Assembly (NCBI GenBank): GCA_002269645.1
Contig: NIVC01004361.1
Span: 1-48,564 of the forward strand
From: Macrostomum lignano
Lineage: Eukaryota
DNA length: 48,564 bases
Reading direction: 5' to 3'
Positions 19,801 to 25,800 of this stretch are shown here, piece after piece (the stretch's first letter is position 1; the number at the start of each line of letters is the position of its first letter). The position numbers were made by a program, and so were the translations under genes. The notes below the pieces were generated by a model. That model was not told where the DNA came from. It saw nothing but the letters and a program-made list of their open reading frames with translations, and did not search any database.

Positions 19801-22800
19801 CTCTCTCTCCTTCACTTCCTCTCTCACATGTACTCTCTCCCTCATCTCCTCTCCTAAATCTGCTCTCTCCCTATCTCCTCTCCCATATCTGCCCTCTTCC
19901 TTATCTCCTCTCCCTTATCTACTCTCTCCCTTTATCTCTTCCTCTCTCCCTTATCTCCTCTTCATCTCCTTCACCTCCTCTCTTTTATCTTCTCTCCCTT
20001 ACTCCTTCATTTTTTCTTTCTCATCTCACCTCTCCCCCTTTGTCTCGCTAATTTTCTATCAGCGACTGCTTACCTGATACCAGATTTCATGCTTCCACTT
20101 ATTTTATTGGACCTAAAAAGTGAAAATATGGTGCATTGTTTAAGTTTTACTATACATCCGCTAATAGTTCAATAATAGCACCTACTGGTACATGTAGAGA
20201 AAAAAGCTCGTTGACACGCTGAACAGAAGAACCTGGAAATTTCGGTACACCAATTGATAATTTACTCGTATTTTAAAGAATGTCTAGCCACAATAAATAA
20301 ACGATCGAATTACCTCGCCGTAGGGCAGGGGTCGAATAAGCTTCCGAGTTTTCAACATCAAATAGATTGTTTCCATTGCCTGAAGAAATTGATTCGTATT
20401 TTTAGACAACAAAAAATCTAACTATATAATACCTTGCCATTAGTCAAGCCAATGACTGAAACTATCTATGACCCGAATTTTTAATGACTGAAGCTATCTA
20501 TGACTCGAATTTTTAATGACTGAAGCTATCTATGACTCGAATTTTTAATGACTGAAGCTATCTATGACCCGAACTGTCAATGACTGAAGCTATCTATGAC
20601 CCGAACTGTCAATGACTGAAGCTATCTATGACCTGAACTGTCAATGACTGAAGCTATCTATGACCCGAACTGTCAATGACTGAAGCTATCTATGACCCGA
20701 ACTGTCAATGACTGAAGCTATCTATGACCTGAACTGTCAATGACAAAAGCTATCTATGACCCAAAATGTCAATGACTGAAAACTTACTATGTTTGCCATG
20801 TAGACGGCAAGAAGAGACCGACTGAAGAAAAATAGTGAAAAAAAGATGAATTTTTCTTGGAAATTAGGATTTTGAACTGCTCGCAGAAATTAGGAGTTCA
20901 TTAACAGATAACTACAAAATCTACCTCATCAAATTAGCCAAAGAATTTTACAATATTCGTATAGACACAATAGTTACAAATAGAAAATGATGATATGCTC
21001 AATGATGTCAATACCTGTCAATCAAGTATTTTGAATTTTGTGTAAGGTTACTCCAACATTCAACCGTGCCTCTTGTTCAGTGCGTGTCTAATAAGCAATT
21101 AACTTGAGCACATTTGCGATAGGTGTAGAAAAGCAGTAAAATGAAGCATTACTTGACATTTGCTTTATTAATTTGAACTGAAAATGATTAAAACACCAAC
21201 TAAGAGACGAAGTCTAAACATAAAAGCTTAGCATGCGGTTCAACAGGTCTTATGGTGTGAAATATTCATCCATCAACCAATCACCAATCAATCAATCAAT
21301 CCAGCAATATAATCTATTTATCTACCCATCTATCTATTCAGGGCCAAATTCGACCCTCGAAGACTCTCTATCCGGCCCTCGGTTCCTTTAAAACTTCATA
21401 ATCGCAATCCGGCCAAGCTCAGGGTTTGTCTCTTATCTGTCTATCTATCTATCTATCTGTCTATCTATCCATCTATCTGTCTATCTATCTATCTATCTAT
21501 CTATCTATCTATCTATCTGTCTATCTATCTATCTATCTATCTATCTATCTATCTATCTATCTATCTATCTATCTATCTATCTGTCTATCTATCTATCTAT
21601 CTATCTATCTATCTATCTATCTATCTATCTATCTATCTATCCATCTATCTGTCTATCTATCCATCTATCTGTCTATCTATCTATCTATCTATCTATCTAT
21701 CTATCTATCTATCTATCTATCTATCTGTCTATCTATCTATCTATCTATCTATCTATCTATCTATCTATCTGTCTATCTATCTATCTATCTATCTATCTAT
21801 CTATCTGTCTGTCTATCTATCCATCTATCTGTCTATCTATCTATCTATCTATCTATCTATCTATCTATCTATCTATCTATCTATCTATCTATCTATCTAT
21901 CTATCTATCTATCTATCTATCTATCTATCTATCTATCCATCTATCTATCTATCTGACCAACTATTTCCCTAACTTGCTTTGTAATCTAGCTTTGTAAATC
22001 TAGCTAGTGCACAAAAAATTACTGGCATATGAGCAGTGCATTTCTATCCGGGCATTACCGCGGCTTCCGCTCAAAGCACACGGACGCTGCTGAGCAGGTG
22101 AAGGAAGGCAGGAATCCTGTGTTAACTAGCGTGAGGCTGTCAGTAACAAGGCGCCTAGAAATAACAAGGAAGAATATTGAAACAATTGAACTAGAACAGT
22201 AAACAAATACGATTGGCATTACTGCTTGCATTTCGGATCACACCAGTCTGGTGCAGTCCTGCTGGATGCTCTGTTATAACTTGTTTAAAAAATTCAAAAT
22301 GGCTTTTTCACAGCATTCAGTAAAGCTCCACAAGGGGCAGAGCAGAGAAGCTTTGCGTCAGGGTGCTCAAAGCCTTCTTGTGAATGAATTATTATACTCA
22401 TATATAAACATTTCCAATGGCTAATTTGATAAAGTAAATTTAGAGTCAAATTAGGTAAGAAAAAACTAATAAAGTAGATTAGTCGCAAGTTTCAAGTAAA
22501 AGATAGTGAGCGATAATGATAATCTAAATTGTAAGAGAATAAATGTTATTAGTAAAAGTAATATACTAGGTTATATGCAGTTTAGAAAGGTAATGAAAAG
22601 TTGGATAATTAGGTGCAAATCAGTATATTAAAATCCAAAAAAGAAAAAGGTTGTGTCATTTAAATAACAAATAAATTTTTTAAGAACTATGCAGAATTTT
22701 TGGTAAATTTGGCTAAAATATAGATTTCTGGCTAAAATCTAGGGAGATCTGGCTAAGATCTAGGGAGACCTGGCTAAAATCTAGGGAGATCTGGCTAAGA

Positions 22801-25800
22801 TCTCTGGAGATCTGGCTAAGATCTCTGGAGATCTGGCTAAGATCTAGGGAGATCTGCTAAGATCTAGGGAGACCCGGCTAAGATCTAGGGAGACCTGGCT
22901 AAGATCTAGGGAGATCTGGCTAAAATGTAGGGCGATCTGGCTAAGATCTAGGGAGACCTGGCTAAAATCTAGGGAGACCTGGCTAAAATCTAGGGAGACC
23001 TGGCTAAGATCTAGGGAGATCTGGCTAAAATCTAGGGAGATCTGGCTAAGATCTAGGGAGATCTGACTAAGATCTAGGGAGACCCGGCTAAAATCTAGGG
23101 AGACCTGGCTAAGATCTAGGGAGATCTGGCTAAAATCTAGGGAGATCTGGCTAAGATCTCTGGAGATCTGGCTAAGATCTCTGGAGATCTGGCTAAGATC
23201 TAGGGAGATCTGGCTAAGATCTAGGGAGATCTGGCTAAGATCTCTGGAGATCTGACTAAGATCTCTGGAGATCTGGCTAAGATCTAGGGAGATCTGGCTA
23301 AGATCTAGGGAGATCTGGCTAAGATCTAGGGAGACCTGGCTAAGATCTAGGGAGAGCTGGCTAAAATCTAGGAAGTTCTGACTAAGATCTAGGGAGACCC
23401 GGCTAAAATCTAGGGAGACCTGGCTAAGATCTAGGGAGATCTGGCTAAAATCTAGATAGATCTGGCTAAGATCTCTGGAGATCTGGCTAAGATCTAGGGA
23501 GATCTGGCTAAGATCTAGGGAGACCTGGCTAAGATCTAGGGAGACCCGGCTAAGATCTAGGGAGACCTGGCTAAGATCTAGGGAGATCTGGCTAAAATGT
23601 AGGGAGATCTGGCTAAGATCTAGGGAGACCTGGCTAAGATCTCTGGAGATCTGGCTAAGATCTCTGGAGATCTGGCTAAGATCTAGGGAGACCTGGCTAA
23701 GATCTAGGGAGATCTGGCTAAGATCTAGGGAGACCTGGCTAAGATCTAGGGAGACCTGGCTAAGATCTAGGGAGATCTGGCTAAGATCTCTGGAGATCTG
23801 GCTAAGATCTAGGGAGATCTGGCTAAGATCTAGGGAGACCTGGCTAAGATCTAGGGAGACCTGGCTAAGATCTAGGGAGATCTGGCTAAAATCTAGGGAG
23901 ATCTGGCTAAGATCTCTGGAGATCTGGCTAAGATCTCTGGAGATTTGGCTAAGATCTAGGGAGATCTGACTAAGATCTAGGGAGACCCGGCTAAAATCTA
24001 GGGAGACCTGGCTAAGATCTAGGGAGATCTAGCTAAAATCTAGGGAGATCTGGCTAAGATCTCTGGAGATCTGGCTAAGATCTCTGGAGATCTGGCTAAG
24101 ATCTCTGGAGATCTGGCTAAGATCTAGGGAGACCTGGCTAAGATCTCTGGAGATCTGGCTAAGATCTAGGGAGATCTGGCTAAGATCTAGGGAGATCTGG
24201 CTAAGATCTAGGGAGATCTGGCTAAGATCTCTGGAGATCTGGCTAAGATCTCTCGAGATTTGGCTAAGATCTCTGGAGATCTGGCTAAGATCTCTGGAGA
24301 TCTGGCTAAGATCTAGGGAGACCTGGCTAAGATCTCTGGAGATCTGGCTAAGATCTAGGGAGATCTGGCTAAGATCTAGGGAGACCTGGCTAAGATCTAG
24401 GGAGATCTGGCTAAGATCTCTGGAGATCTGGCTAAGATCTAGGGAGACCTGGCTAAGATCTAGGGAGACCTGGCTAAGATCTAGGGAGATCTGGCTAAGA
24501 TCTAGGGAGACCTGGCTAAGATCTAGGGAGATCTGGCTAAGCTATATGGAGATAGGAATGGGACCTCCAAAAAAATTTATATTTTGTTTGTAAAAACAGC
24601 AGCAACTTGAAGAGAACAAGGTAGGCTGAAAACAGCCAGATCAACACACAACAAAACACTGTCATGCACAATAAAAATCAAGCAAAAGCGAATTGATTTA
24701 CCGATCTGGTCTTTCAACAGACAATGATAGCGCTGAGCATGGTGGGGCACAGGTGAGCACTTGATACAAATAGTAGAATGGAAAGCATTTCCTGAAATTG
24801 GGGGTCAATTTTCCAGATTTACATAATAAAAAATATATCAGTCTGTGCTTAAAATATTACTTTTCAAAATAAATAATAAACTGAAAAAATCATTGCCAAA
24901 TTACTGCTAGCAAGCTGTTAGTAGTCAATAAATTGATATTGCATTGAAAAATACCTTTAGACTCTAGATCAATAGAAGACTAGCTATTGTATTTGAAAGT
25001 TGAATAAAATCATGCTTTGGTAAATGATAGATACTTATAGAAGCAATGGTGGTAATTTTATATTAATATAACAACTTTTCTTGCAATTAAACCTAGCTCA
25101 AGTATGCAAAATGAAATGCAAGCAGTATTTGCCATTTGAAACTCTTGAAAAGTACTTTAAATACTTTGAAGACTTACCTCCATAAGCAGAATGTGACAAT
25201 GAACGTTAAGCCATTTGTACCAAGGAAAAATGTTGACCTAAGTAGCTCAGGAAACATCTTTTTTAGATCTTGACTGAGCTTGGATTTCTTCTGTTGATTT
25301 TTCCTCTTTAGAAACATTGCCAACTAAAATTGAAGACAAATTTTAAATTCAAGCATAATATATATATAGTAAATTTCTTGCATATATATATACAGTTTTA
25401 GAACCTAGTGTTAGTGAGAGTATGAATTTGAGCCAACAACTAGCCAATTCATATTTAGTTGTCTATGGCCAAAACCAGGCCCTATGGAAAGTGTTTAATA
25501 TAGCACCCAGCTATCTTTCTTAGTCCTTTTTCTTAGTTTTCTAAGCAGTTATTATGCCATTGTAGACTAGCAAAAAATCAATATTAAAATAAACTTGTTA
25601 TATTTATAATTTTAAGAAAAACTATTGTTAGGCTAGATAAGATAAATCATTATTATTGAAAATGGGCCCATAGTAATAATCTCAAATCTATTATATGATA
25701 TATTAGAAAAAGTGACCAACTACACAATATTTTCAAGTTTAAGCCAGAAAAACAAATTTACTTGTGATATATATGCTAGGCATTATCAGAAAGTGGTGCA

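Follow-up and report, generated by a model that had tools for sequence, protein, structure and literature searches.

A candidate pair of third exons in one of two tandem TMEM135 genes

The 48,564-nt stretch of Macrostomum lignano DNA analysed here (hereafter the window; one whole contig of assembly Mlig_3_7) carries two TMEM135 genes, copies A and B, arranged in tandem on the minus strand, and our subject is a pair of candidate alternative third exons in copy A, 3a and 3b. TMEM135 (PMP52) is a conserved membrane protein of peroxisomes and mitochondria that belongs to the Tim17 family. The two genes were found by tblastn with a vertebrate TMEM135, which served solely for locating exons. Without counting 3a, copy A has nine exons, GT-AG boundaries at every intron and a product of 476 amino acids (aa). 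Protein searches returned full-length matches to metazoan TMEM135 up to E 1e-100, and PF15982 matches the copy A protein with 126 bits in its 3b form and with 117.9 bits in its 3a form. Exon 2 is identical to the annotated protein P0003 and near-identical to P0001. The exons of copy A and the corresponding part of copy B are as follows (the 3b type is defined below):

27234-27076, minus strand: copy A exon 1
25323-25178, minus strand: copy A exon 2, 146 nt, 3' end TGG AG followed by gtaagt; constitutive upstream partner of both variant exons
24791-24702, minus strand: exon 3a, 90 nt, unannotated; acceptor ccccaatttcag, donor gtaaat
22154-22059, minus strand: copy A exon 3b, 96 nt, 3b-type, the variant found in annotated M. 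lignano proteins derived from copy A; acceptor tgttatttctag, donor gtaatg
20821-20788, minus strand: copy A exon 4, 34 nt; constitutive downstream partner of the variant exons
20379-20314, minus strand: copy A exon 5
20232-20186, minus strand: copy A exon 6
20112-20074, minus strand: copy A exon 7
19540-19366, minus strand: copy A exon 8
17514-16846, minus strand: copy A exon 9 (last)
41399-41494, minus strand: copy B exon 3, 96 nt, 3b-type (26.6 bits with the 3b-type profile)
41495-41825, minus strand: copy B intron 2, 331 bp, upstream of copy B exon 3

On the minus strand, the order is exon 2 (ending at 25178), 3a, 3b and exon 4 (starting at 20821), with 386 bp between exon 2 and 3a and an intron of 2,547 nt between 3a and 3b. 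Both variant exons take 2 nt (AG) from exon 2 and hand 2 nt (CG) on to exon 4, and all four splice combinations are open: 476 aa with 3b only, 474 with 3a only, 506 with both and 444 with neither. The original prediction for this locus had proposed two exons of 90 and 96 nt with canonical splice sites and the same phase, the first lying 386 bp from exon 2 and either or both includable in frame; coordinates, sites, distance and frames were all confirmed. The same holds for two similarities that it had pointed out: the tails of 3a and 3b have 7 of 13 residues in common, and 3b of copy A shares 17 of 33 residues with exon 3 of copy B, the NTGFLP core included. Intron 2 of copy B, said to have no counterpart of 3a, indeed yielded no remnant of it, profile scores being below zero in all three frames and blastn-short giving no match. 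Copy B has evidently lost 3a.

Exon 3a matches a separate class of TMEM135 exons

When TMEM135 homologues are aligned, their exon-3 segment takes two forms, which we named the 3a type and the 3b type. The 3b type has 31-33 residues and ends in AILLERKSR; the 3a type has 31 residues and carries CGIPAC..S.S(V/I)ER.DR, the signature of the class being RK..G(F/Y)Y...C.(I)P.C..S.S(V/I)ER.(D/E)R. Profiles were made from 8 mollusc 3a-type exons and from 13 3b-type exons, both without flatworm sequence, and were compared with 1,095 open segments from both strands of the window, each bounded by AG and GT, 75-120 nt long and in the right phase. The scores were:

M. lignano 3a: 28.3 bits (E 7.5e-8) with the 3a-type profile, 0.7 bits with the 3b-type profile
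M. lignano copy A 3b: 9.9 bits with the 3a-type profile, 19.3 bits with the 3b-type profile
M. lignano copy B exon 3: 15.4 bits with the 3a-type profile, 26.6 bits with the 3b-type profile
Best decoy unrelated to TMEM135: 7.3 bits with the 3a-type profile, 5.4 bits with the 3b-type profile

Exon 3a is the top match of the mollusc-only 3a profile among the 1,095 segments, with a gap of 21 bits to the next candidate outside TMEM135. It aligns gap-free to the eight mollusc 3a-type exons, and 15-16 of its 31 residues are identical to those of the oyster exons. One could suppose that the resemblance arose by chance and that 3a is a mere open AG..GT segment of intron 2, given how weak the direct similarity between 3a and 3b is in M. 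lignano (7 of 13 residues and 26 of 57 nt identical in the tail, 9.9 bits for the 3a profile on 3b and 0.7 bits for the 3b profile on 3a). The E-value obtained with a flatworm-free profile, the rank and the 21-bit gap effectively refute this idea, to which we assign next to no probability, and the 90-nt length, phase and position of 3a also match those found in other phyla. Note that similarity beyond chance is thus proved by how well 3a matches 3a-type exons from other phyla and not by its weak match to 3b. By these comparisons, 3a is almost certainly orthologous to the 3a-type exon that molluscs, annelids and a nemertean have, and 3b of copy A is identified as the orthologue of the spiralian 3b-type exon.

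This changes one element of the original prediction, which took the 90-nt exon for a far more diverged duplicate of exon 3. That 3a is a much-decayed copy of copy A exon 3 is ruled out by its scores with the two profiles (28.3 versus 0.7 bits), and since 3a agrees more closely with its class than 3b does with its own (28.3 versus 19.3 bits), the decayed copy gives way to an old, distinct class. The proposed tandem relationship itself is likely. Cross-scores that are weak within M. lignano are clear at the level of the family (10-27 bits for the 3b profile on mollusc 3a-type exons, 8-21 bits for the 3a profile on 3b-type exons), and the two exons have the position and order of a pair annotated as either/or in other spiralians. 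Exons 3a and 3b of copy A, which share the same phase, are thus probably homologous and tandem-duplicated.

The exon pair in other spiralians

Comparison with other spiralians bore the arrangement out. A 90-nt 3a-type exon is present in genomic DNA of two oysters and one annelid, in each case in the order exon 2, 3a-type, 3b-type, exon 4 and with constant phase, as in copy A of M. lignano:

Saccostrea cucullata (L003): 3a-type exon at 6958-7047, 90 nt, 397 bp past exon 2; 3b-type exon at 8668-8760, 93 nt
Pinctada imbricata (L004): 3a-type exon at 14940-15029, 90 nt; 3b-type exon at 16255-16347, 93 nt
Dimorphilus gyrociliatus, an annelid (L005): 3a-type exon at 1239-1328, 90 nt; 3b-type exon at 1579-1671, 93 nt

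At the protein level, RefSeq holds isoforms X1 and X2 whose sole difference is a 3a-type versus a 3b-type segment, in the nemertean Lineus longissimus (XP_064629515/16, both 449 aa), in Haliotis rufescens (both 447 aa) and in Mytilus californianus (463 and 462 aa); 3a-type isoforms are also recorded there for Magallana gigas and Ostrea edulis. A short profile of 81 aa run against a database of 5.8 billion proteins gave 62 candidates and 1 match, and a full-length profile was used instead. With the full-length search and a search of 1.84 billion cluster representatives, further 3a-type exons were found in Littorina, Patella, Physella, Elysia, Mercenaria, Ruditapes, Mya, Dreissena, scallops and the annelid Paralvinella, whose exon begins with RKIFPFYTYY, close to the start of M. 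lignano 3a. Judged from these sequences, the 3a/3b pair is present in Mollusca, Annelida and Nemertea, and now in Platyhelminthes.

Predicted protein consequence and probable exclusive use

TMEM135 is described as having eight transmembrane segments, which make up two linked Tim17 domains (PMC5072337). Exon 3 lies within PF15982, the N-terminal cysteine-rich region. AlphaFold models of the two forms of the copy A protein, with a mean predicted local distance difference test score of 70.4 for the 3a form and 80.9 for the 3b form, have the same helix layout; in both, the part encoded by exon 3 runs from the end of helix 2 through a turn and a 17-residue helix (110-126 in the 3a form, 111-127 in the 3b form) to the ERxxR loop before helix 4. 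In these models, what the swap exchanges is helix 3 of the Tim17-like domain of four helices at the N terminus, a membrane helix, in agreement with the hydrophobic segment named in the original prediction. A fold search of the PDB gave no match at E <= 0.001; the low-significance matches were to Tim17/Tim23 chains, which had the best probability, and to complex-I B14.7.

Two copies of the third helix, or none, would be expected to invert the topology of the remaining protein, and this is probably why the exons would be used as alternatives. The pair would not be mutually exclusive if 3a were instead an ordinary cassette exon, joined with 3b or skipped together with it. The lengths of both exons are multiples of 3 and the products with both or neither stay in frame. 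RefSeq contains such products, namely isoforms of Mytilus galloprovincialis (P0038, P0047) with both exons (X1) and with neither (X4), and an isoform of Dreissena polymorpha (P0052) with neither. Both exons also stand in tandem, 3a type first, in some gene models (Haliotis rubra, Pinctada), and the models that carry both comprise P0006, P0008, P0050, P0083 and P0124. These cases count against strict exclusivity, and in bivalve annotation the pair is not strictly exclusive. However, many of the models with both exons are ab initio predictions, the three species with X1/X2 isoforms described above show clean swaps, and an eight-helix protein with two or zero copies of this helix would have its downstream topology inverted. 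We therefore consider ordinary cassette use improbable and favour an either/or choice between 3a and 3b.

Use of exon 3a in M. lignano

Several observations weigh against the current splicing of 3a. All five M. lignano TMEM135 proteins that we inspected contain 3b, and in two further cluster members covering the segment (P0112, P0113) it is copy B exon 3, also 3b-type. The Mlig_3_7 annotation drew on RNA-seq of whole animals together with a de novo transcriptome and was then filtered for GenBank (PMC5730564), and 3a is absent from the inspected proteins despite this RNA-seq basis. Moreover, the polypyrimidine tract of 3a is modest and weaker than that of 3b, and 3a departs from its class at three nearly invariant residues (G to P, G to A and A to C). 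Since the inspected proteins carry 3b and the annotation is RNA-seq-based, 3b is taken as the major form.

Two further copies of the locus in M. lignano, L001 and L002, match the window with 98.6% and 96.7% identity over 27500-24560, that is, from upstream of copy A exon 1 to the minisatellite that separates 3a from 3b. In both, 3a and 136 bp around it are identical to the window, with an open frame and canonical splice sites. This identity does not point to constraint: among intronic windows of 90 nt, 22% are as invariant in the three locus copies as 3a is, and we dropped it as an argument. The functional case for 3a draws on its deep conservation: frame, splice sites and class signature have been kept, while the introns of copies A and B can no longer be aligned and copy B is left without a trace of the exon.

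These observations bear on the view that 3a is a recently silenced relic of an ancestral alternative exon, unspliced in M. lignano and too young to have decayed. Its absence from the inspected proteins, the three substitutions and the weaker polypyrimidine tract would all fit such a relic, and copy B shows that the exon can be lost. On the other hand, none of the three locus copies, which differ at ~4% of non-coding positions, has lost the frame or either splice site of the exon, and 3a fits its class better (28.3 bits) than the expressed 3b fits its own (19.3 bits). Neutral sequence also decays fast here, as is seen from the introns of copies A and B, which cannot be aligned any more. A silenced relic is on balance unlikely, and 3a is probably spliced in M. 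lignano at present. It is likewise probable that the tandem-duplicated alternative exons of copy A are an ancient pair that this gene has retained. One exon or the other would then enter each mature mRNA, giving two proteins that differ in the third helix alone; 3b would be the default in whole animals, and 3a a minor or tissue-restricted form missed by the RNA-seq-based annotation.

Age of the pair

The 3b type alone was found in all vertebrates sampled, in arthropods and in a coral. Among other deuterostomes, every isoform of the sea cucumber Apostichopus (P0082, P0104, P0105) has one 3a-like exon, and the crinoid Anneissia (L006, 9965-10096) has a single 3a-like exon fused to exon 4, the exons of the two animals carrying a CGIPAC or GIPAC motif. 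The hemichordate exon-3 segment has an intermediate form. In the amphioxus Branchiostoma lanceolatum (P0108/P0076), known here from isoform proteins, X1 contains two tandem exon-3-like segments, apparently 3b-like then 3a-like, and X3 contains the second of them only.

The original prediction had proposed a paralogue-specific switch. This stands insofar as copy A alone carries the pair in the window; as to its origin, the comparison with other phyla indicates that the 3a/3b switch is ancestral, not invented in copy A, and was lost by copy B. The alternative third helix would thus have persisted in at least four phyla of Spiralia for more than half a billion years, which marks the helix as functionally important and suggests that the two isoforms have different properties.

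A minisatellite, and a putative intron duplex as a lead to the choice of exon

The usual enforcers of exclusivity do not apply to this pair: the intron between 3a and 3b is long, all splice sites are GT-AG, and no combination shifts the frame. Exclusivity is not enforced by exon arithmetic, and it follows that the choice must be under regulation, unless proteins that carry the helix twice or not at all are simply of no use. The introns around the two exons contain the following elements:

22727-24553, no strand assigned: minisatellite between 3a and 3b, 1,827 bp, 21 bp x 87, 91% matches (Tandem Repeats Finder, TRF)
25113-25135, minus strand: left arm of a putative duplex, AUGGCAAAUACUGCUUGCAUUUC, starting 43 nt past the exon 2 donor
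22212-22234, minus strand: right arm of the putative duplex, GAAAUGCAAGCAGUAAUGCCAAU, ending 57 nt before the 3b acceptor

The minisatellite, which the original prediction had rightly put at 1.8 kb, varies among the locus copies, from ~1.83 kb in the window to ~2.08 kb in L001 (~12701-14779) and ~1.33 kb in L002 (~29441-30766). Its RNA is self-complementary and folds better than shuffled versions (z = -2.66). An inverted-repeat scan detected a perfect 15-nt complement between 25127-25113 and 22234-22220, which with its flanks would form a 20-bp duplex of -30.4 kcal/mol; within the window the 15-mer occurs at these two sites only. We assessed it by exact-complement statistics on the shuffled intron: for the 1,778 nt of non-satellite intron, an equally long long-range complement arose in 3 of 500 dinucleotide shuffles (P = 0.006). 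Pairing of the two arms would loop out 3a together with the minisatellite and may favour 3b, which agrees with 3b being the annotated form.

Set against this role are three points. The loci of Saccostrea, Pinctada and Dimorphilus have no comparable intron complement (P 0.7-1.0), the inverted-repeat scan detected no duplex partner near 3a, and the duplex is without covariation support. Both arms are identical in L001 and L002, which is uninformative as conservation. Because the oysters and Dimorphilus show no such pairing and 3a has no partner, this is not a docking/selector system; that the 20-bp duplex directs the choice between 3a and 3b is a tentative lead. More doubtful still is a wider scenario in which the pair predates Spiralia, descending from a bilaterian ancestor with reciprocal loss, and in which a 20-bp duplex peculiar to the M. 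lignano lineage decides between the two exons there by looping out 3a with the self-pairing minisatellite.

Exon 3b is also flanked by two weaker inverted repeats, imperfect and collinear, of 24 nt (88%) and 25 nt (76%), at 22289-22441 and 20917-21039. They are candidates that we did not use as evidence; if real, they would loop out 3b and cross the 15-bp duplex.

Other features of the locus

The annotation of the two genes on this contig is irregular. PAA47697.1 (BOX15_Mlig022125g3, 475 aa; window 16846-42545, minus strand) is apparently chimeric, with exons 1-8 taken from copy B and the final exon from copy A, and its near-identical cluster mate P0002 spans ~26 kb in L002; the 5' exons of copy A itself are without annotation here. 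In L001, copy A is annotated correctly and the 3' half of copy B forms a separate protein of 282 aa. Two models from the older ML2 assembly, P0003 and P0005, skip copy A exons 6-7 or 4-6 and then run out of frame, and they reflect either faulty prediction or aberrant splicing.

The last exons of copies A (16846-17514) and B (28842-29464) are GC-rich and share ~90% DNA identity, compared with 71-74% for exons 1, 2 and 8 and introns that do not align, a contrast that suggests gene conversion of the 3' exon. A GC-rich region at ~10700-13200 on the minus strand (GC content 0.55-0.60), with broken open reading frames and reverse-transcriptase-like and endonuclease-like motifs, is probably a degraded non-long-terminal-repeat retrotransposon. 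Apart from intron 1, the larger introns of copy A are mostly filled by simple repeats (17600-19340, 19640-20060, 20480-20780 and 21434-21954), comprising GTCT and TAGTGTCT arrays, a purine-rich GGAGA-like tract, a 32-bp repeat and (GATA)130; similar GTCT arrays occur in copy B. The last of these intervals corresponds to one further feature:

21434-21954, no strand assigned: (GATA)n microsatellite in the intron between 3b and exon 4 (TRF)

Comparison with known systems

Mutually exclusive exons are reportedly born by tandem exon duplication, as Kondrashov & Koonin in 2001 and Letunic et al. in 2002 are said to have described. Exons 3a and 3b resemble pairs of this origin in being adjacent, probably homologous exons of similar length and identical phase that encode versions of one structural element and have long been conserved. 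They differ in that the textbook mechanisms of enforcement do not apply to the M. lignano pair (long intron, U2-type GT-AG sites, no frameshift).

In other genes, exclusive choice involves competing RNA structures between a docking site and selector sequences, as in Dscam exon 6, 14-3-3xi and Mhc, or the looping-out of exons by intron pairing. The M. lignano locus is similar in that a predicted stable duplex (-30.4 kcal/mol) joins the intron past the upstream constitutive exon with the intron before one variant, and its formation would draw this variant near and loop out the other. It differs in that one variant alone, 3b, has a partner, and in that the pairing is without conservation or covariation beyond the species. 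With transgenesis available, M. lignano offers a tractable case for asking how a frame-neutral exon pair, kilobases of satellite DNA apart, stays exclusive.

The closest parallel is provided by the X1/X2 pairs of other spiralians, which concern the same family, the same two exon classes and the same phase; their 3a-type exon measures 90 nt where genomic DNA was checked (two oysters and one annelid) and appears as a 31-residue segment in the RefSeq isoforms. Full-text literature searches found no description of the TMEM135 exon pair, in line with the earlier remark that no such arrangement was known; that remark does not extend to RefSeq, where the X1/X2 isoforms of Lineus, Haliotis rufescens and Mytilus californianus encode the swap. 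The flatworm pair differs from these in several respects: the gene is duplicated and one paralogue keeps the pair, a 1.8-kb minisatellite lies between the exons, 3b measures 96 nt as against 90-93, and 3a is an unannotated candidate exon. Overall, the TMEM135 exon pair was already visible as unremarked RefSeq isoforms, and the flatworm 3a, a missing exon that the M. lignano annotation now gains, is a new extension of an old spiralian pair.

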